A stretch of DNA of 64,000 nucleotides from Eutreptiella sp. 'Long Island Sound 2002' (lineage: Eukaryota > Protista > Euglenida). Under the pieces are notes generated by a model. The model ran no database searches. It was not told the origin of the DNA and saw nothing but the letters and a program-made list of their open reading frames with translations. The translations under genes were made by a program, and so were the position numbers. Positions 10,201 to 58,785 of this stretch are shown piece after piece. The DNA lies in NCBI GenBank assembly GCA_964036045.1, contig OZ038378.1, positions 172,236,001 to 172,300,000 on the forward strand, written 5' to 3'. Each line of letters starts with the position of its first letter. Position 1 is the first letter of the stretch.

Positions 10201-13200
10201 CTTATCAACCGTCAAGGGGGGGCACCGTCGGTGAGGATGCCTTGTGCAATTGTTTGAGTGATGCACCTATTGCCCGCAAGCGTATGATTCAGGCACCCAG
10301 CCCAACACACCAAGAGGCAGTGGGCTGGGTTGGTGAGAAATTGGGTTTATGGCTGAGCCAAGTTTGTGGAAGGTATGTCGCTAAATCTTTTTTTTTCGTT
10401 GTCAATGGGCTTCTGGGTTCCTCCTCAAAATCATTGAGGAATTAGCAGCAACCATCCAAAAGCCTCCGAGAAGCAACAACAAACATCCAAAAGCCTCCGA
10501 GAAGTAGCAGCAACCATCCGAAGGCCTCCTAGAAACAACAGGAACCACCCAAAAGCCTCCAAGGAATGGCACTATACATCCAACCTCAGTGCACAGATTT
10601 CTGGGTAGGATGCATCGTAAATCAGCAGCCCCCTCTCCCAACTAGGGGGCAGGTGCATTAAAAAGAAAGAGGCAGCCACGTCCCACAGCGGAGGGGCACA
10701 ATGAGATTTGCTTTGTGTGTATTCAGAATCCCCTCATGTTTTTGTGTGTATTCCCTCCCCTCACTATGCATTCTTGCACTAATGAATACAAGTCACAACC
10801 ACGGAAGGTGAGGTTTTTTTAAAGCATTTAAGGTATGATGCTTGCAATGTGCGCCTAGGATCACTAGGGAGCCTACTAGGGGTCTGGTGGGGTGGGGTGG
10901 GGGGCCAGGCTCGCACGCCTCCCTCGCCCGGAGTTGCAATGGACCCCAGTGTATGCTCTTTCTCCTCATTCTCTCTTTATAAATTTTGCACAATTTCCTT
11001 GAGTCTCTCTGATAGCTCTCATTATTCTCTCCTTGTACGCCTCTCACGCTTTCATCATCACCTGCTGGGGAGCACTCCCAGGTGGTTCTGCCAACCACAA
11101 GACGCGGAGTACCCCCGCCCCCTCCACCAACGTGGCCTCCAACCAATAGTTTGTTGCCAAAGGTGCTGGCTTTAGGAGTCCATGAGAACGCTTTTCCTGT
11201 GGCACCTATGGCGCTTGCGGCTTGCAGTTTGGGAAACCTGCCTGGGTGTGGAATATTGTTGACCTAAAACGGAGGCACGTGTGAGTTGTATTGAAGTTGT
11301 TGTTGCTTGTTTTTCTTTTTGTTTTTTCCCTAGGTTACAGCATATTCCATTGCCAACACATTGCCCCAACCTAAACCTCACCAAATTCAATCGCCACAGA
11401 GCAATGGGAGTTGGCATCTGGGAAAGTGTTCGCCGCAGAGTGATGGAAGCAGGCACTGTGTTGGTGTTGCAATGAATGAGAGCAACATGATTAGGCTGAC
11501 AATGACACTGTGACCCACAACCATGATACAACCAAGACCAAGTACTTACCCATTGTGTGTCATGTTGTTGCTTGATTCAAGGGGTATGGGGAAAGAAGTA
11601 GTATTGGGGCTCTGCTACTTCTGATTGAGGGAGTAACACCCCTCTTCTTTGACCACACTAGAAGACTGAGGTTCCCATCCACGCTTTTGCACGTTGAGCT
11701 CGGCAGGGGTTATGTAGCCATTTCTGATTTCCTCCCCACGTTGGGGACACGAGAAGGTAGCAGTGCAGCCATTTCTACCCCACATGGGAGACCCTAAGAA
11801 GGCAAGGGTTATGTAGCCACTTCCGATTTCCTCGCCTCCTTGGGGACCCTGAGAAGGCAAGGGTTATGTTGCCATTTCCCATTTCCTCCCTGCTTTGGGG
11901 ACCTGAGAAAGCAGAGGTTATGTAGCCACTTCTGATTTCTTCCCTACTTTGGGGACACGAGAAGGCAAGGGTTATGTAGCCACTTGGGAAGGCAGAAAAA
12001 GGTTTGCGCGGGGGGGGAGGGTGTTCGAGCCCCCCCGAAGGAGGGGGGGGGGGGGGCTCCAAAAGGGGCTAAAACGGCAGGACCATTCATAGCACAAAAA
12101 TTTGGGAATTTTTCCCCCATTGAACTGAAAAATGTTCTAGACCTAACTCCCACCGGTCCCTATGGGTGCTCCTGGTATGCTCAACATTGGTGGGCGATGT
12201 CTGGCTGGTGTAACACCTTTTTTTGGCAGATCCAATTAGGGGAGGGGAAAAGAGAAAAAACTGAGGACTGGGGGCGCCTCCTCAGGAGTTGCAATGCCCA
12301 ACCCCCTTATAAAGTGGGCTAAGTGAAATACGCACTCCGACCCCCCCCCCCATCCCTTGGGGGCTACAAAGGTGGAGGAATAAACCAGTATCTTTTTTCA
12401 GCACCAATTGTGGGTGTTCTGCATTTTACGAGAATGTGAGACATCATTCCTTTGCCCTTTAAACCTTTTTTTGTGCCACGCATCCCCTATGAAGAGTTTT
12501 GGAATGAATTCACAACATGTTTTCGTGTGCGAGATGTTTCCATCCACCCTTTTGAAGGACAAAAACCAAGTAGTCCAGCAAAGGTGGGGTTTGAAGCAGA
12601 ACATTGCAAAAGGGATAGCAGACAATAGGTGTACAATTGCAACATTATTGCCTTTAAAAACCAAAGTAAAGGCAAGTTGTCAAGAAGCACACCACTTGAG
12701 GGCAGGTAAACATTTTACTCCCGTGGATCACTTGCTGCGGGACTGTGCATTGGGTCGTGCCAAAGGTGCCCCTGCCCGTGTGAGGTGTGCAGCAAATGCA
12801 TTTGCTTCTTGACATGGAGGAAGGATCTCAACAGCAGCTTCACCTCACAGACCATTTGTGCCTGAATGGTTTGTGAGGCAAGGGGGGCCATAATGAACAC
12901 CTTCATGTCACAGTAGCCCCCCACAAGGTCGTGTGCCGTTGAGTGGTACGTATGTTTCACACGCACGATGTCAAACTGGGCCCTCAACAACCAAACAAAC
13001 CATGTGTGAGCCATCGGAATTTGCATCATTCTGCATAACATCCTCCACATGTGTAGCTTCAGCAGCGTCAACAGGCAACCCCTTAGCCTCACGGATAATG
13101 TTGATGATACAGACACATACACAGACCCAGCATAGGCATAAGAAGATGGACCCGTGCTCGCAATTGCTTGATTAGCAGCACTCGCATCTTGCGGGACTGG

Positions 13201-16200: not shown

Positions 16201-17104
16201 GGCAACAGGTGCAACAGGTCGTAGGCCCTTCCCTAGGTTTAGGACTGTGAGGCCAAGTGTAGCCTAATCAATGGCCAGCATGCCCTAACCTAGCCACATA
16301 GGTCAGGATTAGAAGGAGGGCAAAGGGTGGCTGGGGAGTCTGGGGCTCCGTTAGTTGGCCCTGCGCTCGTGGGCCTATGATGGGATGAGCTATTAGAATC
16401 ATATCAGGTAGTTGCTTGCCTCTTCCTAGGCTACTAGCGGGACACTTGCTTCCCCTTCCTTGCGCTCTGTAATGTGCGACACCGCTCTGCCCCAGAGGCT
16501 GCCTCGTACATCGAGGAGAAGGGCCACGAGAAAGAAGAAGAGTGTGTGGCCCTTACTTCAACAATTCACCCTCACTGGGGTACTCCGTGTCCAGAGCCCC
16601 CCCCCCCCCCCCCGGAGCGATATAAGAAAATTGTCTGTGTAAGGATAGTACAAGGTTGTACCTGTTACAGCCGCAAGGTACAAAGAGAGTCTCTTCAAAT
16701 GTCGCCTCATATTCGCCTAATGCCCTTGCACCTGCACTCATCGTAACATGCATTTTGCTGTCAGTTTGGTTGGAAACAAATGCAAAGCAGAATGAGGAAA
16801 AGATGGTCCATTTACGAGCATTGCGGAACGAACAATCCCAGTTCAAAGAAGCCCAACGCCGATGGGAGGCTGTATGTGCTATTGTGACGTGTGTGGCTTT
16901 GCTGGCAGTGGCAGTGGCCATTGTGGTGTATGGGTGGAGGACACGATTTCTTTTTTCCGATTTTGATTTCCCTTTTAAAGGACCACACAAGTTACAACTG
17001 CCATCGGCTGCCATCAGTTTCTTTCTAATCGCCGTGAGGTGTGACTGCTGAGCCACGAGAAATCTCTCCACATTCTGCAGGGTTCAGTTCCTCAGAACCT
17101 TTGA
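1..17104 (+). CDS. Gene 1 (5' end outside the window): multi-exon, charged coiled-coil protein; possibly ciliary/trichohyalin-plectin-homology-like, family not assigned
   Basis: Phase-consistent GT-AG exons: <1-50 ([16 protein letters not shown]), 530-670 ([47 protein letters not shown]), 2228-2355 ([42 protein letters not shown]), 8641-~8707 ([21 protein letters not shown]), 16791-16871 ([27 protein letters not shown]), and a candidate last exon 17081-17104 (GSVPQNL*). All are E/K/Q/R-rich and helical. Extra exons in the two long introns could have been missed. Confidence 0.65.
1041..1240. repeat. (CT)n and (GA)n microsatellites facing each other
   Basis: (CT)n at 1041-1094, a spacer of about 44 bp, then (GA)n at 1138-1240. 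Confidence 0.95.
3050..5830 (-). pseudogene. Decayed non-LTR (LINE-like) retrotransposon remnant in a gene 1 intron
   Basis: The minus frame near 3500-3570 reads [23 protein letters not shown], resembling the S..GLQ.QL..L..FC...G segment after YADD in LINE RTs. WKHILGT follows, and there are many stops and frameshifts. The YADD motif itself was not seen. Confidence 0.45.
5935..5990 (+). repeat. Hexamer array (GGGCAA/GGACAA)
   Basis: About 9 degenerate units. Confidence 0.8.
6740..6940 (+). repeat. Tandem duplication with a period of about 127 bp
   Basis: GAAAAGTGCTTGCRAGGTTGCATGCGAGGTTGGC occurs at ~6742 and ~6869. Confidence 0.8.
9200..10400 (+). pseudogene. Possible decayed RT-like remnant
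   Basis: Fragments [16 protein letters not shown] and [13 protein letters not shown] weakly resemble the LINE RT D..KAFD and ..GLQ..LD regions; heavily disrupted. Confidence 0.25.
11690..11990 (+). repeat. Minisatellite with a unit of about 56 bp (GGTTATGTAGCC family)
   Basis: About 5 units of AGAAGGCAAGGGTTATGTAGCCACTTC.GATTT...TGGGGAC; related units at 14361-14405 (reverse) and 31660-31900. Confidence 0.9.
12400..15930 (-). pseudogene. Decayed coding remnant, probably transposon-derived; family not assigned
   Basis: Protein-like stretches broken by stops (for example [30 protein letters not shown] and [14 protein letters not shown]), Cys clusters, and TG/CA-rich composition. Confidence 0.3.
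15961..16085 (+). repeat. (CCT)n trinucleotide microsatellite with a degenerate tail
   Basis: More than 20 perfect CCT units, then GTCCTC/GGTCCT variants. Confidence 0.95.
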
Positions 17105-18118
17105 TAATGGACCCATCTCAGGGGAGGGGGTCGAGGCATGACCGTACTCACCACAACAGTCAGTAGCAGCATGTTTCTATCACCCCAACGCCGGACTGAA
17201 GTGACGGGGGAGGAACCCATTGCAAGCCACGCGACAGTATGTCATGGACAGCCATACTAATACACAAACACGCAGTATTCTGCGCATGGGGGTCGAAGTC
17301 ACCCCTTCAGTCACCCCTTGCGGAAGGTGCTCGTAAACGACCACCAGGAGATCACGCGCACACACGAATGGTAGGCAACACGGCCAAAAGAAGGCACACA
17401 AAAGGTACACCCTTGCTTTGTCATTGTTTGGTCCCTGGTTGTGGTTTTGCATGGCCCCATACGCTATTTCGGTGTGGGCAACCATTCACCTGCTTACATA
17501 CTCCATGTCATTTCTGCCTTGTTGACGACCTGGCACAGTGGTCCTGAAAAGCACCCACGCCCACTTTTATCAGACTAGGTGCCCCAGTGCGGGTGGGGGG
17601 AGATTGAGGTCCACATTTCCCCTGCAATTTCGGAATTTCTCGCTTTTTTTGGCTATTTCCTGCATTTTCCCCCCGCAATTTTCCGCAATTACTTTTGTTT
17701 TTGAGGATGCTTTTCTTGATTTCACAGTCAACTTTTGGTGGTGACTGGCTGTGACGTGGAATGCTTTTTCTCACAGTGCAGCACTGTTTCCAAGCGTCAG
17801 CACAAATTGAATGACAACATCTGCCGCTTTCGTTTCATGGATCAATTCCATGGTCACGGCGGGGACGTCTCCTCAGTTTTGGTACGCGACTCCCCCCCCC
17901 CCTCCCGCCCTCTGGGCCCAATTAGTTGCCAAGGGTCAATAGCTACTGGCCATGCATATGGTGGCACAGAAGGCGCCTGAAAAAAAAATTTATTCCCCTT
18001 GCCCACGTGGCACCCCTCCGTGCCCAAGTTGTGGAGTGTGGATGTGAGGCACCCCCACTTGCCCTCTTGGCACCCCTCCCTGCCCAGGTTAGGGTTCGGG
18101 TTCGGATTAGGGTTAGGG

Positions 18119-19423
18119 TCACCGAGCTGGTGGAACCAGTCTTGGTTTTATAACCCTCTTTAGTGTCTAGGGTGGAGACCTAACAAGTTTGGCAAGCAAG
18201 CAGCAAGCAAGCAGCAAGCAAGCAGCAAGCACGCGCGAAATGGGGAAAAATCACAGCTCTGTCTTGGTGCTTCGCATTTGGCTAAAATTTTCGTGGATGA
18301 TACCCATGGGTGTGAGGGACAACCACACAAAGTATGAGCCAGAAACTCAACAGTGGCGGCTGGGAACGGGTGTCGCATGTGGTGTACCTTCGTTTCCAAA
18401 TTTGTGGAAAATGGCAAAAAATTGCCATTTTTGGGGCAGGTTGGGTGCCTAGGATGTCCATGGAGGGGTGCATTTGCATTGGAACCAACCAAGATGATGA
18501 ACAAACACCTTTTTTCACACTATAGTGTGTTTTGCACTTGACTGGTGGCCTCGGCAACCTCTTTTTGGGGCCAAAATAAGGCAAAATCAGCCTTGAAAAG
18601 CACCCTTTTTGCACACCTTTTCAAGTTCCACCTTCCCATGCTGTATTTGATAGCCATGGAATGTGTTGGGCACCCTCGTGGTGATAAATAACGATGAAAG
18701 GGATCACGCGCAATGTTATTCCATGCTGTCAACACCCTTCACTGCCCTATTGGCACCACCAGCGTGCACGGTGCACGTGTTGGGGTAGGGTTATGGGGGT
18801 CACATGGGGGTCCCAAAATGGTCAAAAATGATTTTTTTTCCAAATTTGGTCCCAGACCACTTGGGGTGCTCAAACAAGTGGCTTAAGGCTATCTTGAGCC
18901 GTGTCTAACCCATGGTAGCCCATGTAAGGTCCCAAAAACCCTTGAAATGGGCAATTTTAGGGCTTGCAGTGCATAAGGGAGGGGGGTGTCCAGGGGGAAC
19001 GTGTTGTGTTTGAATGCTATGTATTGCTTTGGGCACCCTTGTGATGACAAATAATCATGAAGCAGATAATTTTCAACCTAATTGTGCGTAGTCAACACCC
19101 TTAATCCCCCATTGGAGTGCCATAGCATGTACCATGCACATGCTAGGGTAGGGTTATGGGGGTCACTGGTGGGTCCAAAAGGGGTCAAAAATGATTTTTT
19201 CCAAGGCCGTTCTTTGACTACGTGGGGTGCTCAAACAAATGGTTTCGGGCCATGTCGAACTATTTGTGACCCATATTAGCCCATGCAAGTTCGCAAAAAC
19301 TCTTCAAATGGGCAATTTGCAATTGTTAACTACCTTTCAGCCATGTCCCCCCTTGTTGGGCCCATTTTGCTAGTGTAGCTCCTGTTCCCTCCCCAGCACC
19401 TCGGTCCCAATATTGAGTCTTGA
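18119..19423 (+). mobile_element. Telomeric-repeat-flanked element, copy A1 (full length)
   Basis: Starts TTAGGG|TCACCGAGCTGGTGGAACCAGTCTTGG, has an internal (GCAA/GCAGCAA)n tract and an internal duplication of about 360 bp, and ends TCGGTCCCAATATTGAGTCTTGA|TTAGGG. Confidence 0.75.
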
Positions 19424-19435
19424 TTAGGGTTAGGG

Positions 19436-20021
19436 TCACCTAGCTGGTGGAACCAGTCTTGGTTTTATAACCCTCTTTAGTGTCCAGGGTGGACCTAACA
19501 AGTTTGGCAATTAAACAGCAAGCAGTAAGCAGCTAGCAACAAGCAGCAAGCAAGCAGCAAGCAAGCAAGCACGCGCGAAATGGGGGAAAATAACAGCTCC
19601 GTCGTGGTGCTTCGCATTCGGCTAAAATTTTTGTGGATGCTACCTATGGGTGTGAGGGACAACCACACAAAGTATGAGCTAGAAACTCAACGGTGGCTGC
19701 CGGGAACGGGCGTCGCAAGTGCAGGACCTCCATTGCAAAAGCTGCAATTTAGGGCCAAAATCAGCCTTTTTTTGCCCAAAACCGCCCTAGAACCTGCTGA
19801 AAACGGCCGAATGAAGGGAAATAGTGGCTACTCCACACATACAGCTAGACTTCCCCGTGCCGAAGGGCCCTCTAGGGCCCTCTAACTCCACAATATGTCC
19901 TTGCTGCTTGCTGCTTGCTGCTTGCTGCTTGCTGCCTGCTGCTTGCTTGCCAAACCTTTTAGGTCTACCCTAGACACTAAAGAGGGTTATAAAACCAAGA
20001 CTGGTCCCACCAGCTGGGTGG
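19436..20021. mobile_element. Telomeric-repeat-flanked element: truncated copy A2 (+, 19436-19900) fused to an inverted 5' fragment A3 (-, 19901-20021)
   Basis: Both outer ends carry the same approximately 120-bp 5' sequence in inverted orientation; flanked by (TTAGGG)2 on the left and (CCCTAA)2 on the right. Confidence 0.75.
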
Positions 20022-20490
20022 CCCTAACCCTAACGTCTGCTGTTGTAGAGTAACCCCTTAGGCCACTGCATCCCTGCCAGACTGGACTAGACCTCTGCTA
20101 ACCCTCTCACCCGGGCGCCCCCCCCCCCTTAGCGACTAGCCAGTCCCCTATAGAAGCCCTCCTCGACGGCTACCCCCCCCCCCCCCCAAGACCCCCCCCT
20201 CCTGTTGGGGGCCTTTGGCCCACTTCTACTTGGGGGGGAGTCGCATACAAAAGCCAGGAGACGTCCCTCCAGTGTCCATGGTGATGTTGAGGGCCGGCTC
20301 CTGTAATTGTACTGCCTGTGGACCAATTTGTACGATGCAAAGAAAAGATGTTATGCAACTGTCCAGAAGTGATGTTTCCTTAGGGTTGAGGAGGGTTGCG
20401 TGCGCCAGTGCAGTTTCCCCCTCCCTGTCCGGTGTCTCTTGTGTCGCAGTGGGAAGATACCGCTCAGCTTCCAGCCAACAGCAGCAAAGT

Positions 20491-23400
20491 ATGGACGGCG
20501 CGTCAGCGCTGCGCTCAAGAAGTGGGGTCCTTAAAAAAGATTTGCGACCTCGACTCTCTTCAGCCGGAGCGCTTCTTCAGTCCTTGTATGTCCACAATGT
20601 GCGTGCGTGTGTCCTTAGCTGGATGGCCGCGACTCTGGGATGGATATTCCACATGACCCTCCTGACGCAATGTGTGGCCTGCGTTTTCCTGACAGGAAGG
20701 CACGGTGTCGTCTGCAGGCCTTCTTCTTGTTTTGAATGGGACTGGAGGCGGCCCGATGACACTTTGTGGTGCGACGACACTCTCACTGATGCGCGTTGGC
20801 TAGCGCCTGTTTGTTGCGTTTGATGTTGGAGTCGTGAGTCACGCCGATGGATCGTCCTTCCCGTTGACGGTTGGCGGTTGGCGGTTGAGCGACACCAGTG
20901 TGCATTTGCCAAAATTTTCCGTAGGCATGCGGTCCGTGTGCCCATCATGTACCGCACATCATTTCTGGCGTCTGGCACCCTCCAGAGGGTGCCTTGGTGT
21001 ATTCACTACCGCCCCACACCCAGAACAAAGCATGGCAGTCAGTTCGTTCATAGAGAGGAGAGTGCCCCAACAGGCTGGTTCATGCCGTGGTTGGTCCACC
21101 ACCGCAGTCGGCTGGCAATGGAAGGTAAGAAATTCAAAGTCAGTGGCATTTGAATGACGGCGGTTGGTGCTTGGCATAGGCTGCCCCTGCGGCACGTTGC
21201 ACCACAACCTCGCTCACCTTGCCATTACCTCTGCGCTTTCAAGACTATCCTTCGCCAATGCTTCAGCTTGAGCACTTCATTTCTCGGAATCAAGTAATCA
21301 CACGGAGAATGGATCTGGAATGTGGCTACATCTCCCCTGCCGTATCAGGGCCATGCGAAAACTGAGTGTGGATCATCGTGACATCACCATTACCATAACG
21401 AGGCCAAAAATCTGCACATTCGTGTGAGTTTAGTTTGGGGGGCTGGGGAGATGGTGGGTGTTGGGGTCCGGCTCTACACATAACAGCAGCCCCCCAAGAT
21501 ACGACTGCGCAAACAACACAACATATGACCGCACCAACAACACACCAACAAGACAACAACACAATATACCACTGCACCAGCAACACATTCTACGACTGCA
21601 CCCAACAACCAAATATACAACTACACGCGGCCAAAAATTTGCACATTCCTGTTGGTTAGGTTTTGAGGAGTGGGGAATCGTAGTTGTTGGGGTCCGGCTC
21701 CAAACGTAACCGCACCTTCCCCATGATACGACCGCACAGACAACACAATGTTCGACTGCACCAACAACACAATATATGACTGCACCAATAACACAGTATA
21801 CGACTACACCAACAAACACAATCGGCAACTACACCAAAAACCACAATATCCAATTGCACCAAAACAACAACATACAGCTGCACTGAGAACCACCAACACA
21901 ACTACGTAAAGAACAGAGGGAATGCAATCATGCCAAAAAAAAAGAAGAACCAAAAAAAAACTTCGCCCCGTCTGGACTCCCCTGCTCATCGCCCGCGAGG
22001 TTTTGACGCCCCTGCGCCCTCCAGAAAACAGGGCAAGTCTACCAAGGCTCCACCTCCACCTTCGCCTTACTCACCTGAATTAGTTTGTCCCCGCCCCTTC
22101 TGGACCCCACTGTTCACGCTGCTGGTGTTGGGGTCCAGGACTGAAATGAATTTATTTTGTCTGATTGGTGTGTCTGTATGTGTCAGCCACCATTCGTATC
22201 ACTGCTGCTTTCTCTCTCAGGTAAGAACGAAAAAACGCCCCATTCTGCACATCGGAAGTCCCAGGCGCGTTCCATGAGCGACCAGCCCTCACAGACAGAG
22301 AGATGGCAGCCGCCTCCAGTGTCCCCCGAGGACTTAGAGGTGTTGCGTTTTGCTTCCTGGTTTTTTCCTGAGGAGCCGTTTGGGATCTTCATGCTCTGTG
22401 CACCCCCAGGGCAGGGGCATTGATGGTCACCACAGGGCGCCTGCAAAGAGATTGGGCGTTGATAAGGGGGTCTTGAGTCTGGTAGGGTCTGCTTATTCAC
22501 ACTTGATTTTCCCTGAGCCACATCGGGTCATGCTCCGTTTATGGGTGGGAGGGAGGTGGGTGGGGCTCTGTTGGCCTGTGCTTGAATGGGGGCGAGGCTG
22601 AACGGAATCTCAAGAGCAGCTACAGCAGCGGTGAACGGCGATTGCAAAAGCGACCGGGTGGGGAATTCGGGCGGTTACAAAACAATTTGAAGGCAGTCGG
22701 GGACCGACGAGCGATTTGAGCCCTATTGACAGTCACTCCCTGGGGGGCATTCCCCCTTTCAAGCGGAGGTCATGGGCTCTGGACCCCCCCCCCCCCTGTT
22801 AGAAGCCCCTGTCAGGAAAATTATCCTGCAGATGCACACCGCAGCGCGCACAAGTCAGTGCTGGAGCCGGCAAACCCAGCATGGACTCGGAGTGTGCATC
22901 TGGATGCACCTGGTCACCGGCACGGGCAACAGCCCGTCTCCGGGACAGCCGACCCTGGAGTAGTCAAACAGGACAAGTCATCCAGGGGCTCCGTTGACAC
23001 AACCAAAACACGTTCGGGCCCACAGAGTGTCAGAATGAGCAGTGGCGAGAGGCCCATAGGCGCCGCCAGAGGCAAACAATCAGATACCGAGGCTTTGTGC
23101 CAAACCCCCCCCCCCTGTTAACGGGGACTGCTGGGAGGTGCTGTTCGCTGTTTCAGTGGAGTGCTGACAGGTTCAATGCTGTGTGGAAAGCGTAGTCCTC
23201 TGTAGTAGTGCGATTTGGCCCGGCGATACGTGCTTTCCCGTCTCCTTGCAAGGGCACAGGTTTGTTCGTGTGTGTGCGTGTTGTACTCCCGCGCGCACAC
23301 GCACACGCACACGTACACGCCCGCGCACGCGCGCAGTGGTTTTTGATGGCTGCATTTCAATGCGCAATTTCGATGCTTTTCAGAATTCGGAGCTGCGGCA

Positions 23401-32235: not shown

Positions 32236-34475
32236 AAGTAGCGCGCAGTGCGCGCGCAGTGCAAAGATTCCCCCACAGAATCTTCACTCGAACACAATGG
32301 CAGCAGACAGGCACAAATATGATGCCCCAGCAACGTGGAACAAATGGGCGGTGGTGGGATGCCTGGTCCACATTCGTGACCCCCCCACCCCACACACACA
32401 TTATTGGTGGAGAGCACCTAAACATCATGGTCTGGGGATGGACGCCACGAGGGCATATTGGGCGGAAAGTCCAGTGTGCAGGCGACCAAGGACGACTTTC
32501 GTAATCCGCTCATTGGCCTCCCTTGACCCTCAAGTCGTGCACTGTATTTCTTCGTTCCACAGGGCGCGAATGAGGGCAATACCGTAAATCAAAGGCTGAT
32601 GGCGAACTGCATCATGTGGGGTTCAGCCGTCAATTCCCGAGTGTAGTCGCAGGTCTGTAGATCCAGGGCCTGCAAATCTGCTGTGTTCCCAGAATTTTGA
32701 CAAGTCCCCTGTTTGTGCGCGCGCGTGTGTGTGTGTGCATTGTGCTGTGTGTGTATTGTGCTGTGTCCTATCATATTAAGACAGAGTCAATCAGTCAGCA
32801 TCGGTCGGTAGAAATCAGGTACGTGGGGCCAGGGGTCAGTCTGTGGCCGCAACAGCCCCCAGCCCCTTCCTTTCTCCCTTCCTTTTCGACAGATAGTCCC
32901 CCGGCAACGACCTTTGAATGCCCGAAAAAAAGACATTCCATTCGGGAATTTGGGAAATTCCATTGCGTTCGGTAAGTCCACCTCACAGAGAACTGCTCCT
33001 ACCCACTGACCACAAAGTGGGCCAAGCATTTCGCCTAGATCCAATCAAATGGGCTGATATAGTCCGAAAACAGCCTTTTTTTACGGGCCCATGGACGCCA
33101 ATAGGTGGACATAGTTGGTGCTGTATGGCTCCCCGAGGGTTGGTATGTACTCCTATTGTCACCAAATGATGACTCAAGCCTGCCCCAGCCCACGGACTTT
33201 GTCAGTCGTCACCCAAAAATCTTACAGTCAACCCATGTGAGCATGAAAACGGCGAACTGCTAATCAGTGTGGCGGACCCGGGATGCCCCCCATTGGTTCA
33301 CGGGTCCATATAGAAGAAACAAGTTGCATGGGAAAGTTTTTTTTGAACAATGCCGGAGAGACACAGAGATGTCTATGGCGCGACCCAAGGTCAAAGCAGT
33401 AGTGCACCCACCCGCCGCCCACAATCGCAATATCCCTCTCCCACCCCCAAGACACAAAGGACCTCAACCAACGCAACCGGGTCATATGAACGACATGGTC
33501 CTGGATACTGGTTGTACTACACGCCAACCAACGCGCCTTTATGGAACAGTGTGTACCCTGCTTTGGATGCAGGCCTTTCTCATGATTTGAAGGTTATCCA
33601 TCCGCACTCCTCCGGCCCACCATGCACACGAAACACTGGCTGGATAGCACGAGCATCAACACGCAAACAGCGACACCCAATAGCCCACGAGAGCGATGCA
33701 TCCGTTGGTGAGGGTCAGGCACGGATGGGGGGCACACACATGCACAACGGGCAAACACATGCACGGCGGCCTCAGACATGGGCACCGGTCCCCAAAGAGT
33801 GGTCTGTCTCAGACCCCCGCCCGCTCCGCTCCAAAGCGTCCGTTGCTTTGTGGCCAGGAGTGGGTGCCAAGTCGGAGCCCTCCTCCGCCTCTATGGCTCA
33901 GCAGTTGGCGGAGGTATATTTTCCAATGAAGCCCCAATTTTCTTTAGGACTTTGCCATATTTGTAGCCTCATGGGGCCGACCCCCAAGTTGCACGAAGCC
34001 CACCGGCTGTAACAGGCACACACCACGGCATGAGGTGACACTCCGGGAGGCCCAACATACAGCCACATGTCCGGCTCTGTCATGCATTTGGGAACCACTG
34101 CTCGCTGGCAGTTGGCGCGTTTGCACGGGTATAAATGGCTGCTGGGGCTTTGAGATGCGGTTTGCGAATATGGCGCGCCCCGGGGGGGGGGGGGGGGAGG
34201 GAGGCGAGTTGGTTGCCGTGTAGTACCACCAAAGGATAATTTTAGAGAGGGACAAATTTGATGTGGACAAATTTGGAAGCCCTACCTCGTACCAAATATT
34301 TCCTTCAATTTTAAGGATGCGATGTGTCAAAATGTGTGCACCACGCATGGGCTGCAGGAGGGGTGGGTTTTTTGCGCGCTGCATGCAGTGTGAATGCGCA
34401 ACAAAGATGAGACGTGGTGTCAAGTGACACTGCGTTCTCTGTAGGTCCTCAAGACCGCCGATGTTCACAGCAGAA

Positions 34476-34825
34476 GGATATCAGCAGCCATCCAGAGGCC
34501 ACCAGGAAAGAACAGCAACCATCCAGAGCCCATCAGGAAATATCAGCAGCCATCCCATCCAGAGGCCACCAGGAAATAAAAGCAACCATCCAGAGCCCAT
34601 CAGGAAATAACAGCAACCATCCAGAGCCCATCAGGAAATATCAGCAGCCATCCAGAGGCCACCAAGAAATAACAGCAGCCATCCAGAGCCCACCAGGAAA
34701 TAAAAGCAACCATCCAGAGCCCATCAGGAAATATCAGCAGCCATCCAGAGGCCACCAAGAAATAACAGCAGCCATCCAGAGGCCACCAGGAAATAGCAGC
34801 CATCCACCAGGAAGCAACAGCAAGG
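34476..34825 (+). repeat. 31-bp minisatellite, about 11 units
   Basis: CAGCA(G/A)CCATCCAGAG(GC/CC)CA(C/T)CAGGAAATA; relatives at 8270-8370, 10440-10570, 44125-44160 and 2820-2880 (reverse). Confidence 0.92.
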
Positions 34826-36889
34826 GACCTTATACCAAATTTTTCCTTCATTTCTAAGAACCAGTTCCAAATTCCCCCTCCCCTAATTTTAGCCCTCCCA
34901 AAAAAAACCCCCAAATTAATCCTTTGGTGGTACTCTGTGTGCAGTGCTTGCTTTCGTTGATCAAAGTTAATTGTGTCTCTCTAGACTGCGGAGGGAAAGC
35001 GCGGGCTTGTATGCCTGTACCACTGCTGACAGGTGCAGCATACCGCCTCCGTGGCGTCCACTCCGCTACCGGCGCCGGTGGGCTTCAGATTTGGTCATTC
35101 GAATGATCGTGAGGGTGCTCACTGACGATGTGGGAAGTGTAGCACAGAGCCAGGGGGTTCGGGATCACCGAGTGTTACCCATCGGTGGTGGGCTGCATTT
35201 CCAGGCCATTTTTGTCCTGAGTGTTGCTTGGGGGGGGAAGCATGCATGTCAATAGCATGAGCAGAGCACAGGGTACAGCACACCATGCACTGCATGTACT
35301 CCACCAAAGCAGACCCCAAAATCGCGTGGTGCTGGAGGTATAAGCCCATGAATCCATGCCCATGGGGCAACCTCTGGAACTGCCATATTGTTCCCAAACA
35401 ACAAGTGTTGTCGGTTGAATTGGCGGCTCCTCGGGCTCACCGGATGTCAGACATCAAGGCTTTTCCCTGGTCTCACGTCATGGGGCAGCTGCATGCTTGT
35501 CAACCAGCAGCAGCGGATGCCGGACCAGCGGACGCAGTCAACGCAGTGTTGCATTGCGATATTGCACGTACTTTGGACCAGGGGTTTGAGTGTTATCTGA
35601 GGGTGGGTTGGTTGGGTCAGCGCTGGGCAGGGGCTGGTGTGTGTTTTTTTTGGGGGGGGGGGAGTGTAGTTCGTTGTAAAATGTGGGGCTGTGCCGTTGT
35701 GTGTGGGGTCTGGGATTGTGGCGTGCAGGTGTCTGTATTGTGGTGTGGAATTGCGGGTCCAAAGTAGCCTACTTTTCGCAAAGCGCGGGCACAGCGCGGG
35801 CACAGTGCACGGTGCGCCCCCTTGCACAACCAACCACAAAAGCACCAAGTTATATGGAAACAACATCTCGGGTTGTTTGCTCAAGGCTGCTATGTCCCAC
35901 CCACCCTGCAATGCACCAACAGCGTTGTGGTCACAGCAAACAAAGTAAGGGGCAGTAACACTGTGGCTCAGCCCAGGAAATGAGATTTGTGGCGGGTGAC
36001 TATGTGTTGTGTTATGTGGGCATGTGGTGCGGGTCAGGGTGTAGCTTTTCACAGCTTTGAGGGTAGCGGTCATTGTGTGTGGAGGTCCGGTGCGCGGGGC
36101 TGTGCAGTGACATCCAGATTGTCGAGCACCAGGGGGGGGCTCATGGCTCTCCGCATGTCACCTGAATGATGTCGCCAGATGTATTTTAGGGGTTGGGTCT
36201 GAGTACCGATCCGCTGCTAACGTCTTGTATGGGCGTGAAAATGGGCGGCAAACCGGGCAAAATGCCAGGGTTTTAAAAAAGTGTTTCTCGCCCCTCACAC
36301 ACCTCAAAATGATTAGTGCGTGGTGGGTATTTGGAGTATTTTGAGTACCTTCCTCCCGACCCCCGTGTGGGGGTTCCAAAAAGTGGACTCGAATCCCCCC
36401 CTCCCCCTTCCTGCACGGGATTCCCCCCCACCCTTGACAACTCCTTGAAGTTTGATATTCTGGATCCATCGGGTTTCCGAGGGGAAGGGATTTACAAGGG
36501 AGGTGACTCCATACCTCAGGGTGCAAAACGTCTTCTCTCTTGAGGACAGATACACGATGTAACAGTGCTCTGTGGCAGGGCGCAACGTAAGTAGGAAATT
36601 GTTGGCGCAATGTGAAATGTGACGCCCCTTAGCCCAGCCATCAAGTGCACACCAGCAACAAAATGGTTGCCACATTGATGGTTCTTACAGCCACACAGCC
36701 GCGCCATCAGACTGTGGTATGCTCTTGCGACAAACACGGCAAATAAATTGGGCGCCAGAGGCAGTGTGATGCTCCATGACAAAAAGTGTAGGACGTGGGG
36801 GGCGGAGTGAAGAGGCCACAAATGGCAAATTAGAACGACGACCCTCGCCTATGCATCTTAATTGGGGGTACACTAGAATTCTCATCACC

Positions 36890-49500: not shown

Positions 49501-51103
49501 CATTCCCAGAAGCACTGGGGGCGGCTACAGCAGCTTCCATGCTCACAGCCACCGCGGCACATATCAAGCGCAGCATCATGCTGAGCTAGAGAGGTGGCCA
49601 CAGTGATAGCCTAGCCACACCACCAGTACCGACAGTTGCCACCGAACACTGAACACTCTCCACTCTTCACTAGATTGAGCCCCAGGTGGCCTCGGGTAGT
49701 CGGGCTGTTTGCAGGACGTTGATAGTACCACTGGGCAATGTTGTCAAGAAACCTGTTTACAGCACATCCTGCGATGATGCGGTGCGTGTGAGTGCCTGTG
49801 TATGTGCTTGGGGCTTGTACGCTTGTGCTTGCGCCTCTGATTCCGTGCTGGGTACCTGTAGCTAAACTGCTGCCCGCAGGTGGAGCGGCTGTCTGCGGCC
49901 AAATTGATGCAAGTGCAGGAGGAGTGTGACGAGCGGGTCCGGGTGGCCGAGGGCAAAGCCGCGGATGTTGTCATGCAGTTTGAGAGCGCCCTCACAAAGC
50001 ATGACCTGGATGCTCAGAATTGGAAGGACACCATCGAGGAACTCCAACGTGAGGCTCAGCAAAGCCAGATCGAGAGGTCCGCACACCCTGTCCTTGCTGC
50101 TGCCTCGAGGTTGCCCCAGAGGGGGTGGGGGGTTGGCATGCGGCCATGGTGTTGGTTTGCTTGCCTTTGGCGGCGCGTATTGCCCGTGCACATTCTGACC
50201 CTCTGTGAGTCTGACCATGTTTTGGTTGTGTCAACGGAGCCCCTGGATGACTTGTCCTGTTTGACTACTCCAGGGTCAGCTGTCCCAGAGATGGGCTGCT
50301 GCCCTTGCCATTGACCAGGTGCATCCAGATGCACACTCCGATTCCATGCTGGGTTTGCCGACTCCAGCACTGACTTGTGCGCGTGGGTGTGTGCATCTGC
50401 AGGGGATTTTTTTCCTGACAAGGGATTCTCACAACCACAACCCTTTCATCCCTTCCTTTGCCTCTTTCTGCACTCTGCACCATTTTCGGCAAGCGCGTTC
50501 TGCCCTGCCCTGTCACCTCCCCTTGTGTTTTCTTTTCCCCAGGCCCAGCTTCCTCTGGGTTCTCCCTGTTCATCCCGTCCTCGGAGTAAAGGGCGGCAGG
50601 GGAACGTGTTGCTGTGGGGAGGGGGAGGGGGGGTGTCGCACCCTGTCCCCTCCTTTCCCTTGAGGAAAGAGATCCTGGCTCAAGGGGGCTCCTTGTTGGT
50701 GTCGGTGTACTTGATGCTGGTGGTTTTGGCCACTTGCTTCTGCTGGCCCACACATTGCAGTCTATCTTGGGCGTAGTTTCATGCTGTTTGCTAGCTTGAT
50801 GGCCTTAGCTGGCGCGGCGGTGGTAGACCATGCATGTAGCACCCGCTATTAGTCCGAGGGTTCGGGACTGGGGCTAGTTCCCCTTTGTATGTGTCCCCGC
50901 AGTTGGGGAGGGGGGGGGGGTGCGGCCTCCCTCCCCTCCCCTGTCAAGTTTAGGGCCCACAGTGTCAAGTTTAGGGCCCACGGTGCCCCAAGCGTCTATT
51001 CTGAGCAGTGGGCTGCCTTATGCTGTTGTTGTGTGGGTGTGGGTGTTCCACTATTGCTGGTGCCGGTGTTGGTCGCCTCCAACATCAGTGCCCCACCACT
51101 CTA

Positions 51104-55342: not shown

Positions 55343-56734
55343 CCTTGACGGGGAGGGGGTGGGGGGCTCCCGGCGGCGTGGCGGCCGCGCGCGCCGGCGC
55401 GGGGGCGGGGGGAGGGCGTGGGACGGCATTGGCAGGATGCGGAAGGACCCGTTTTGCAGCCTTTGGCCCTGCGTGGGGCCGGGCCCCCGCCTGTGGTATG
55501 GCCCGCCAATGGACTGGACTTTCACTGTTGGCACTGAATGGGGGGACAAGTGCTCCTCTCAGCCTCAGGGGCTGGACACGGAATCCCCTCTGCAGAGGGC
55601 GCGAGGTTGAACCCCGGCGGGCCCGCACGTGTGGGAAACGCCACCTGCCCCCCCGCTTTTGGGCCCATTCGCCCGTGGCCCATTGCCCAGGGGGTCAAAT
55701 CCGGGGGTCTCTCCGTTGTAAAACCCTTATTTTGTCCCCCAAAGTCCCCCAATGCCCCCCAAATGGGGCTTTTGGCCAGGGACTCCCCAGACACCCCCAC
55801 TGAATTGCGATGCAGTAGCTCTTGGCAGGGGGCTGTGTTCAACAGGGGTGCGTCTACCAAAGGTGCCACCTCCACCTTCGCTTCGCTCACCTTAACCCTC
55901 CCTCCCCCTCCCGCTGAAGACCCGCTTTTTGTTGGCGGGGGGAAGGGGGTCGCAGGGTTTTGACTGGGCGCTCTCGAGGAGAGTTGGTGCCCCCATTTAT
56001 ATATGTCTCTGCGGGCGTGTGAGGTCGCCGCCAACAGGGCCGTACCCACGCAAATATTGCGGACCCAACGAGTCCCGCAGCACATCTGCCCCTGTGCCGA
56101 CCAGGGGAACCCTGTGACACCAGCCAGCATCTGTCAGCATGGGGTTGGGGGCAGAGACCTGTGCTGCAATGGGAGAATGGAACGACCCCCCCCCCCCCCC
56201 CGCCCCCCGCCTCTGGGCCCGACAGAAAATTCCTCAGAGTAAAAATCAAATTTTGCGAACGAAACCAATTTGTGGCCATTTTCCTGCGCAAACCCCTTGG
56301 GATCCAGGACTCCCCCAATCCACTCCCCCTGTGCAAGTGCAGGTCTTGTCGGGGGCCAGGGCAACTGGATTGCATGGGGCCTCTGTTGCATTTGAAAAAG
56401 GAGACGCTTGCCACTGGGATGGGTCACCCTCTGCACGTGTGGCAAATCCTTTGGGCTGCCGTACAACGTCTTCGGGGGCAGGGGCGCCCAGATTTTCCCT
56501 GCTGTTGGCAAGCTGAAGCGGGTTTGATACCAGATTCACCACGGGGGGGACGTCTCCTCGGTCCCGGTACGCGACTCTCCCCCCCCCCCCCCCTCCCTGC
56601 CCTCCGGGCCAACTTAGTTGCCAAGGGTCAACAGCTACTGGCCATACATATAGTGGCGCCGAAGGCGCCCGAAAATTTTTTTTCATTCCCCTTGCCCATT
56701 TTGTCCACTTTGCACCCCAACATTATCCCTGAAC

Positions 56735-56835
56735 CCAACCTTGACTCTAATGCCCACCCCAACCCTCAGCCTACTCCTAACCCTACCCCCAAACCTTTCC
56801 CTTGACCCTAACCCTAACCCTAACCCTAACCCTAA
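56735..56835 (-). repeat. Interstitial telomeric-type tract
   Basis: Five perfect CCCTAA units next to the element, preceded by increasingly degenerate units. Confidence 0.85.
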
Positions 56836-57979
56836 TCAAGACTGAATATTGGGACCGAGCTGGTGGGGGAGGGAACATTAGATATGAATGGTGAGGGACA
56901 TCAAGAATGATTCACACATTGATGGCTCTTGACAAAGTGAAATGCACCTGAACCCCATCACCACGAGGCCCACTTTCAAGGCTTTTTGGACTTCTCAGGG
57001 GCCAAAATGCCCCAAAATGGGCTCAAAATGGGCTCATTTCACCCTTTTGTGCACCCCAAATGGTCTACGATGAGTTTTGGAAAAATGTGTTTGTGACCCA
57101 TTTTTGACCCATTTTTGGTCCCAAAACAGCCCATTTTCAAGGCATTTTGGGATTTTTGGAGGACCCAAATGGGCCACCACAAGCTCAAAACAGTCCAAAA
57201 ACACTTGTTTTAGCGTCGCACATGGTCTAGGATCATTTTTGCGGAAAGTCATATTTTTACCCCTTTCGGACCCCGTCGACCCATTTGGGTACCCACCTGT
57301 TTGGGCTTGAGCTTGCAGCTTGCCACAGCCTAGTGGGCCTAGGTATTGGGGTCTAGGCGTCCGTTTGGGCAATTCTGAGGGGTGGAAACCACAAAACGTG
57401 GGGGGTTGCGGGTGGAGTAGGTGCCCTCGGAATCGCATTTTGAGCCATGTAGCCAAACATATGGCCTATTCTTGGTTTGTGGTTGTCGGCAGTTGGAGCT
57501 TCTGGGGGCCTTTTTGGGCCGCTTCCGCGGCATATCATGGAGTTAGAGGGCCGCAAAGAGCTCGTTGACACGGGGAAGTCAAGCGGCACGTGGAGTGTAC
57601 CCACCGTTTCCCTTCGTTTGGCCGTTTTGAATGTGTTCCAGGGCATTTTTGGCCCAAAAATGGCTGTTTTTGGCCCTAAACTGCAGTTTCTGAAACTGAG
57701 GTCCGCCACTTGCGAATCCCGTTCCCGGCCGCCACCGTTGAGTTTCTTGCTCAAACTTTGTGTGATTGTACTTCACACCCATAGGTATCATGCACCAAAA
57801 TTTCACCCGAATCTGAAGCACCACGACGGAAATCTGATTTTTACCCATTTCGCGCGTGCTGCTGCTTGCTGCTTGCTGCTGCTGCTTGCTGCTTGCTGCT
57901 GCTGCTGCTAAACCTGGTAGGTCCACCCTAGACACTAAAAAGGGTTATAAAACCAAGACTGGTTCCACCAGCTCGGTGA
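56836..57979 (-). mobile_element. Telomeric-repeat-flanked element, copy A4 (full length, reverse)
   Basis: The reverse complement has the same termini as A1; flanked by (CCCTAA)5 at 56806-56835 and a degenerate CCCTAR tract at 57980-58032. Confidence 0.78.
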
Positions 57980-58348
57980 CCCTAGCCCTAACCCTAACCC
58001 TAGCCCTGCCCCTAGCCCTAGCTCTCACCCTAGGCTCGGGTTAGAATGAGTGTTGGGGTCCAAAATGGAGAGCAATGATGTGGCAAACGCAGCCATGAAC
58101 GAAATTTGGGGGATCTTTTGCAGCCCAATCAACATGGCTGGCATGGCCAAACCAACTGGCTGCAAAGGTTAGGGTTAGGTTTATGGTGATGGTATGGTTA
58201 GAGGGAGGGCAAGGGGAGGTAAGGGGAGCGTGTGCCCCCCCCCCCCCCACCACCCCAAATCTCCCCACCTGGACCCCCCCCCCCCAACCGACCCTCCCAA
58301 CCGCCCCGCCCCCCTCGCCCCTCCCTGAACCCCCCCCCCCCCTTCCAA

Positions 58349-58382
<34 letters not shown>

Positions 58383-58785
58383 TGGGGGCCTTCGGCCCAC
58401 TTCTACTGGGGGGGGGAGTCGCGTACAGAAGCGAGGAGACGTCCCCCCCGTGAGATTCACATTCCGGCCGCCCTCGTTAGTGGCCCTGAAGCAACCGGGT
58501 CACACCCGTACCGCAGTGAACCGCCCCAGTGCTGCAGGCGGGAGTCTTCCAGAGCGCTTTGACACTTGACGAGGCCCAGGTCTTTGGTTTTTGGAGAAAC
58601 CTTTGTAAAAACTCACATGTTTTGTGCCGGGTTGTGCACACTGGCCTTGTCCGACCGCTGCTGTGGTAACGCCACAGACTTGCTTCGGTCTTCACCATCT
58701 GCCCAGCCGTCGCTGTTTTGGAAAGGTGCACCTCCAACCCCCCACACGAGCCCCAGCGGCACCAAGGTAGCACCTGATTGCACCG

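Follow-up and report, generated by a model that had tools for sequence, protein, structure and literature searches.

The 64,000-nucleotide stretch analyzed here (the window) corresponds to positions 172,236,001 to 172,300,000 of contig OZ038378.1 (C1:172,236,001-172,300,000) in the assembly of the euglenid Eutreptiella sp. 'Long Island Sound 2002' (GCA_964036045.1; 2.28 Gb in 2,317 contigs). It contains copies (A1 to A4) of a non-coding element family that occupies telomeric TTAGGG repeats in a single register and a single direction. The family comprises approximately 10,000 copies in the genome, with an element size of 1.1 to 1.3 kb. Integration is scarless and unidirectional at GGG^TTAGGG, which can be read equally well as GGGT^TAGGG, the sole adjacent TT of the repeat. 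The element is probably a non-autonomous Helitron-type DNA transposon whose build is most like that of HINE/DINE-1, the passengers of Helitron2/Helentron. TTAGGG is the product of Euglena telomerase (PMC3622300), which is compatible with the TTAGGG repeat of the studied genome, and perfect long arrays of this repeat are present in the assembly (51,406 overlapping 48-mers).

The ends of the element were counted across the whole genome using terminal 27-mers with up to 2 mismatches. The 5' end gave 11,334 matches and the 3' end gave 9,922, compared with 0 for the reversed patterns used as controls. Among 100 unselected 5' ends, 97 were abutted by a TTAGGG-like hexamer in the same register; the three exceptions were an internal rearrangement, a nested copy, and a tract with six odd bases. 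The 5' end preceded by (TTAGGG)2 occurred 8,316 times genome-wide, and the 5' end preceded by (CCCTAA)2 occurred 0 times. On the 3' side, TTAG... followed ...TTGA in approximately 87 of 100 sampled ends, a count from which the two-hexamer tandem class was left out by the anchor base, and often just TTAG, TTAGG, or TTAGGG stood before unique DNA. Upstream, 1 to at least 5 flanking units were present; downstream, anything between a bare TTAG and several units. Many copies had unique flanks with only one to three hexamers, and units of approximately 1.12 to 1.2 kb often stood in head-to-tail order, separated by 1, 2, or 3 hexamers. The earlier note on this DNA, which was made from the window sequence, had proposed a non-autonomous interstitial family in a fixed TTAGGG register and had set a genome-wide tabulation of flanks beforehand as its test. 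The 97 sampled 5' ends in one register bear out this proposal, as does the tabulation, in which most copies had TTAGGG flanks in that register.

The copies in the window lie within two larger transposons with terminal inverted repeats (TIRs) and target site duplications (TSDs), which we call carriers. The features are as follows.

17855..20274, + strand: carrier 1, a non-autonomous hAT-like TIR element with TIRs of ~45 bp at 17855-17900 and 20230-20274
17847-17854 and 20275-20282: TSD of carrier 1, 8 bp, TCCATGGT, both copies identical
18088..18118, + strand: 5' flank of A1, a degenerate telomere-type tract with the G-strand on the + strand and the last letters TTAGGGTTAGGG
18119..19423, + strand: A1, a full-length element of 1,305 bp
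18121-18133, + strand: 5' subterminal inverted repeat of A1; the element itself starts with 5'-TC
18192-18231: microsatellite of A1, (GCAA/GCAGCAA)n
Element positions 521-839 and 884-1200 of A1: internal direct repeat of ~363 bp
19393-19405: 3' inverted repeat of A1, degenerate; the 3' end of A1 is ...GAGTCTTGA
19424..19435, + strand: spacer between A1 and A2, (TTAGGG)2, i.e., TTAGGGTTAGGG
19436..19897, + strand: A2, truncated to the first ~460 bp, of a sublineage other than that of A1
19898..20021, - strand: A3, an inverted 5' fragment of ~120 bp that includes the microsatellite, head-on against A2
20022..20033, - strand: 5' flank of A3, (TTAGGG)2
56540..58452, + strand: carrier 2, the second hAT-like TIR copy, with one element (A4) inside
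56532-56539 and 58453-58460: TSD of carrier 2, 8 bp, AGATTCAC, both copies identical
56700..56835, - strand: 3' flank of A4, (TTAGGG)5 followed by the degenerate telomere-like tract of the carrier
56836..57979, - strand: A4, full-length (1,144 bp), a member of the abundant subfamily, with both subterminal inverted repeats perfect
57980..58040, - strand: 5' flank of A4, the degenerate telomere-like tract of the carrier, with the last letters TTAGGGTTAGGGCTAGGG

Most of what the earlier note had described in these copies was recovered. The two full-length copies, A1 (18119-19423, + strand) and A4 (57979-56836, - strand), share the same junctions, and A2 begins at 19436, directly after the (TTAGGG)2 that follows A1 (19424-19435). 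The asymmetric subterminal inverted repeat consists of ACCGAGCTGGTGG, located 2 nt inside the 5' end, and its complement, located 18 nt inside the 3' end; this 3' arm is a perfect match in A4 and a degenerate one in A1. Both the (GCAA/GCAGCAA)n tract and the AATATT palindrome are present. The proposed 5' junction motif was exact in A1 and needed correction in A4, where the sequence before the element is ...TTAGGGCTAGGG and the hexamer abutting its 5' end is CTAGGG rather than TTAGGG. A1 and A4 are similar over their first 320 bp (81%) and last 42 bp (90%), with a weakly similar internal module, and they differ over the remainder. Copies of the A4 subfamily on other chromosomes are 95 to 96% identical. 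The lack of coding capacity also held, the longest open reading frame (ORF) being 114 amino acids (aa) long with no Pfam match. The inverted fragment A3, the two carriers, and their perfect 8-bp TSDs were not mentioned in the earlier note.

Whether the TTAGGG repeats are the target of the element or part of its cargo is resolved: they are the target. The earlier note had left both possibilities standing; targeting is upheld and carrying is not, because the number of flanking units varies, empty carrier sites exist, one nested copy has no TTAGGG, and A1 and A2 are separate insertions. The empty site predicted from the filled junctions, CTAGGG TTAGGG (C/T)TAGGG^TTAGGTGTAGGGATAGGA, occurred 184 times genome-wide (control, 0), and the filled 3' junction on the same carrier anchor occurred 159 times. 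The number of hexamers between marker and anchor was equal in empty and filled carrier sites; therefore, insertion added nothing detectable. At locus L026, a copy has inserted into a second copy that is inverted relative to it; the site is T-rich and not telomeric (junctions ...GGCTTGT|TCACC... and ...CTTGG|TTTTTGG...). Comparison with the uninterrupted A4 sequence revealed neither TTAGGG at the ends of the nested copy nor an evident duplication. Both A1 and A2 have relatives on other chromosomes at 86 to 88% identity and are only ~79 to 84% identical to each other. Since they are not closest relatives, they represent two separate insertions side by side, exactly two hexamers apart.

These observations bear on two other explanations of the flanks. 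A DNA circle could have been integrated by a tyrosine recombinase at a TTAGGG core, in the manner of Crypton or DIRS elements (compare the telomere-associated TATE elements of Leishmania). Euglenozoa have telomere-associated recombinase elements, and direct TTAGGG units on both sides, together with tandem units that share one to three hexamers, would agree with such a crossover. However, the crossover would also add the hexamers of the circle, whereas empty and filled carrier sites are equal, and the nested off-target copy lacks TTAGGG on either side. No recombinase gene was found among the ORFs around 45 copies, and asymmetric inverted repeats with 5'-TC and 3'-YTRR ends are foreign to such elements; we therefore regard integration of a circle as improbable. 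Addition of the flanking repeats to the element ends by telomerase would account for repeats at both ends of nearly all copies, but it would give opposite flank orientations, whereas here both flanks are TTAGGG on one strand (an argument made likewise in PMC13085455). With varying unit numbers, empty sites, and a repeat-free off-target copy as well, telomerase addition is extremely unlikely.

The carrier has an 8-bp TSD and ~45-bp TIRs at both window loci, and the flanking parts of carrier 1 are homologous to carrier 2 in the repeat comparison of the window. Like members of the hAT superfamily, it has an 8-bp TSD and TIRs beginning with CAC(G/T)G; unlike them, its TIRs are long (~45 bp) with poly-C. 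The carrier is hAT-like, and other superfamilies with 8-bp TSDs are possible. In carrier 1, A3 occupies the same place and direction as A4 in carrier 2, is cut to ~120 nt, and is joined to A2 (+ strand), which follows A1 (+ strand). A3 forms a palindrome (window 19424-20033) with the 129 nt of 19424-19552, at 89% identity and around a 350-bp center. One inversion does not account for this junction.

Passive spread of the element by its carrier is real. In total, 87 filled junctions at scattered loci are identical over 35 nt, and the filled carriers have a CTAGGG variant that is absent from most empty ones. Local array growth is likewise real, with arrays of 9 to 16 units having identical odd spacers. 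Such arrays were observed at C1:53407780-53428702, C1:14122393-14133025, and C1:22172812-22183294; their spacers (...TTGATTAGCGGGGGTCATCTGT, with a period of ~1,395, and TTAGCCCTAAAGTTAGGG, with a period of ~1,180) indicate local amplification. The earlier note had listed, as a possibility that would count against it, that the element is only an internal part of one larger repeat family. This applies to both window copies and to several hundred others, which lie in the hAT-like carrier, but not to the family as a whole, since the element also occurs solo.

The family might be viewed as an immobile, satellite-like module of the hAT-like TIR transposon that was multiplied by unequal crossing-over and spread only by the carrier. 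Both window loci are inside carriers with their own 8-bp TSDs, and the 87 identical filled junctions, the CTAGGG variant common to filled carriers, and the long arrays with identical spacer variants all fit such a module. On the other hand, carriers hold only hundreds of the ~10,000 copies, many copies have unique flanks with one to three hexamers, and 184 carrier sites are empty. A1 and A2 are not each other's closest relatives, one copy is nested in another, and the unit ends are constant rather than falling at random satellite phases. We consider an immobile module unlikely.

The termini are the best-conserved parts of the element. Column identity was 0.93 to 0.96 in the first 80 nt, 0.92 in the last 38 nt, and 0.5 to 0.9 inside, and subfamilies with different interiors have these ends in common. 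The element begins with 5'-TC and ends with TTGA, CTGG, or CTAG (YTRR). Conservation of the 13-nt subterminal inverted repeat ACCGAGCTGGTGG and of its 3' complement was 88% or more among local copies (47 and 38 copies). A 5' hairpin is predicted in which ACCGAGCTGGT pairs with ACCAGTCTTGGT, one arm lying inside the 5' inverted repeat (z = -1.7 alone and -2.6 with the flank). Among its variants, one is compensatory (L026) and most others weaken the stem, the informative ones being too few to indicate covariation. The 3' end contains only a 3-bp stem (TCA-GTCT-TGA) and the AATATT palindrome. Internal repeats of 160 to 363 bp occur in the elements, and one copy (C9:25961367-25968284; L024/L031) contains an internal array, with a 768-bp period, of at least 9 repeats of the part corresponding to positions ~123 to 882 of A1.

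A site-specific retroelement offers a further explanation of a fixed register. In this case, a non-autonomous element would enter telomeric repeats by target-primed reverse transcription, like TRAS/SART or telomere-attached Penelope-like elements, and repeated targeting or template jumps would produce the stacks. Retroelements specific to telomeric repeats are well known, and TRAS/SART elements resemble the present family in their fixed register and direction in telomeric repeats and in their stacking. The one-direction stacks and the variable number of repeat units on the 3' side, which is reminiscent of a variable tail, also agree with this route. In a search of Logan contigs with the element interior (1,123 letters) as the query, the family was present in both RNA and DNA library contigs, under four organism labels and in several estuary metagenomes and metatranscriptomes. 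The estuary RNA-library contigs would suit a retroelement, but they do not give transcript ends and do not demonstrate transcription, because DNA carry-over is possible. Several features are at odds with a retroelement. The counts of 5' and 3' ends are about the same (11,334 and 9,922), and therefore there is no 5' truncation, whereas TRAS/SART elements are often 5' truncated, have poly(A), and encode an endonuclease and a reverse transcriptase (RT), none of which was seen in this element. No RT was found in the local ORFs, inverted repeats are conserved at both ends, and the off-target nested copy has no repeat tail. Unlike the Penelope-like Athena elements, the family gave no hammerhead ribozyme match, nor any other match, in Rfam. 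A retroelement origin is thus quite unlikely. No sign of an origin as a short interspersed element (SINE) or from a tRNA, or of a ribozyme, was found either: there was no tRNA, no hammerhead, and no other Rfam match at an E value of ≤1 in positions 17000-21000, nor any at the gathering score window-wide.

DINE-1/HINE elements are the non-autonomous partners of Helentrons, and Helitron2 is built alike (PMC4067079; summarized in PMC13085455). The earlier note had concluded that the element fits none of the known classes neatly; this is not supported, as its anatomy matches that of published DINE-1/HINE elements (PMC4067079) almost feature for feature. As described for HINE/DINE-1 (Thomas et al. 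2014, PMC4067079), the element has 13-bp subterminal inverted repeats (subTIRs), of which the 5' one begins 2 to 4 nt inside the terminus, a short inverted repeat that has one of its arms in the 5' subTIR, a microsatellite, and central tandem repeats. It also shares with them a high copy number, the formation of arrays, and the lack of a TSD, and it may share their preference for TT or T-rich DNA as a target. The assignment rests on this combination of subTIRs, nested 5' hairpin, microsatellite, internal repeats, arrays, lack of TSDs, and T-rich off-target site. Of the features that define non-autonomous Helitron2/Helentron-type elements, the subTIR spacing, the 5' nested hairpin, and the microsatellite or tandem repeats were found. 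Of those that define canonical Helitrons, 5'-TC is present, the 3' YTRR is not strictly CTRR, there is no palindrome of 16 to 20 nt such as canonical Helitrons have ~11 nt from the 3' end, and insertion is not between A and T, the upstream base being G, or T by the alternative reading of the junction, and not A. The element differs from HINE/DINE-1 in that ~95% of its copies target one position of the telomeric hexamer in one direction, in that its 3' inverted repeat lies 18 nt from the end instead of 38 to 60 nt as in mite HINEs, and in that its 3' stem-loop is weak and its 3' end is YTRR as in canonical Helitrons. The element would be, on this classification, an unusual target-specific variant of known Helitron-type passengers.

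Potential enzyme sources are abundant in the genome, which has hundreds of Helitron Rep genes that look intact. The Helitron_like_N profile gave 863 genome candidates; all 150 that were scored were above the cutoff, many with open frames of 1,400 to 2,600 aa. Matches (e.g., C2:47279491, C11:29.05-29.24 Mb, and C9:69.2 Mb) were often clustered 12 to 30 kb apart. Because of the open frames without stop codons and the clustering, Helitrons look recently active in this genome.

Several results weigh against a Helitron-kind transposon that targets the telomeric repeat. No autonomous copy with these termini was found, and no Rep gene could be tied to the family; the metagenome scan returned no long version of the element but a single 1.1-kb environmental contig, which contains a tandem element junction of three hexamers. 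No Rep loci were located near the sampled element loci, and among the matches listed, the 17 Rep loci on C1 had no exact A-type 5' end within 20 kb, which is a weak test. The 59 ORFs of at least 230 aa in ~340 kb around 45 copies included no transposon domain, no RT, and no recombinase; their only domain matches were to a FYVE-KH-RING host gene and two chance matches. The 3' end showed no significant fold relative to shuffled sequences (z = -0.2 and +1.8). As for the insertion site, the hexamer number of the carrier tract is polymorphic, and insertion may yet have added one hexamer; the junction T may belong to the element or to the target, so that insertion at TT rather than GT is allowed; and a TT preference leaves unexplained why ~95% of copies choose the telomeric TT over all others. 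Finally, carrier-mediated spread accounts for the 87 identical filled junctions just as well as repeated targeting does. The host gene mentioned above (L035:4694-6484, + strand; C12:53467693-53469483) is an uninterrupted ORF of 597 aa with FYVE, KH, and RING domains that is located 4 kb from an element stack, and it looks like a gene of the host.

If the element is a Helitron-kind passenger, its Rep/helicase (HUH) enzyme would be supplied in trans by one of the many Helitrons of the genome. This enzyme may recognize the conserved 5' 65 nt and 3' 40 nt, with their subterminal inverted repeats and 5' hairpin, move one strand, and join it into single-stranded G-strand repeat DNA. Register and direction would then be fixed because TT, or a required left flank TTAGGG, occurs once per hexamer and on one strand only. 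The C-strand has no TT and no TC, so that only a single register and a single direction would be available to a rolling-circle element that inserts at TT. Recognition clearly includes the left flank, of one hexamer at minimum and two in most cases, as with HUH transposons of the IS91 or IS608 type. IS91 and IS200/IS605 elements are similar in their oriented, scarless insertion directly 3' of a short specific sequence, their subterminal hairpins, and their single-strand intermediates, although they are prokaryotic. Each insertion would leave TTAGGG units on both sides; later copies could therefore land beside earlier ones and form head-to-tail stacks, A1 and A2 being one such pair. Stacks also grow through local duplication. 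The hAT-like TIR element, with its degenerate telomere-like tract, probably served first as a landing pad and then as a passive vehicle at both window loci.

At least 90% of local copies retain a TAACCCT heptamer at element positions 33 to 39, just past the 5' hairpin. This heptamer is the complement of AGGGTTA in the G-strand flank, with which it pairs in the predicted single-strand fold of A1 plus flank. Target choice might conceivably be programmed by this base pairing, as by the guides of IS200/IS605 HUH transposons, though we hold this to be doubtful, and such guide-type pairing is a hypothesis. If true, it would mean that a rolling-circle element of a eukaryote finds telomeric repeats by nucleic-acid-guided homing.

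The closest parallel in terms of target is provided by the telomere-capping Helitrons of Paramecium aurelia (BMC Biol 2026, PMC13085455), for which autonomous copies are known. These are also Helitron-type elements with ORF-less derivatives, are rich in internal satellites, have telomeric repeats of one polarity on both sides, and have been read as specific insertions into one repeat strand. Unlike the present family, they are situated at germline chromosome ends in C-strand orientation. The euglenid element is overwhelmingly interstitial, within short tracts and a carrier transposon, and is in G-strand orientation, in a single-nucleotide register, and in ~10,000 copies. In the literature, no paper was found on telomere-repeat-inserting Helitron-type elements in euglenids. 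Together with the 2026 Paramecium report, our results suggest that telomeric-repeat homing has had more than one origin among Helitron-type elements. DNA transposons with a specific target are rare, and this one combines a single-nucleotide register, absolute strand choice, and ~10,000 copies; it offers a natural system for studying how rolling-circle (HUH) machinery reads its target. The family also illustrates that short interstitial telomeric tracts can seed kilobase-scale tandem arrays and that one transposon can be both landing pad and vehicle for another. For genome annotation, the element explains several thousand interstitial TTAGGG tracts.

Some copies are associated with longer telomeric tracts. 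At least five near-perfect units were found upstream of 232 copies, about a dozen of which are within 600 kb of contig ends. On C16, an element with at least five perfect hexamers upstream (C16:50487933-50487977) lies 50 bp from the contig end, with three more within 106 kb. These C16-end elements are candidate copies within or close to a true telomere. Orientations of the copies near contig ends are mixed, and that of the C16-end elements is unlike a simple terminal array. A long perfect telomeric array was also observed 140 kb from the end of C1 (C1:200826502-200827151 onwards), with CCCTAA on the + strand. Its orientation is opposite to that of a right-hand telomere; either the array is internal, or a terminal piece has been misoriented.

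Other repeats were noted in the window, which has a G+C content of ~53% and numerous dinucleotide microsatellites. An inverted repeat of 237 nt (88%; 22817-23053 and 50175-50411), with arms 27 kb apart, probably reflects a different repeat family that is present here in two copies. The tandem arrays at 34457-34864 and 10421-10606 are related and have a period of 31 bp, and a G-rich tandem repeat with a 30-bp period (55051-55239) lies within a 2-kb stretch at 66% G+C. Outside the window, L046:1-3400 (C27:8429000-8432400) is a 3.4-kb satellite with a unit of ~27 bp (TAATGCTGCGCCCCTTACGACGCGTCG-like) and four frames without stop codons.

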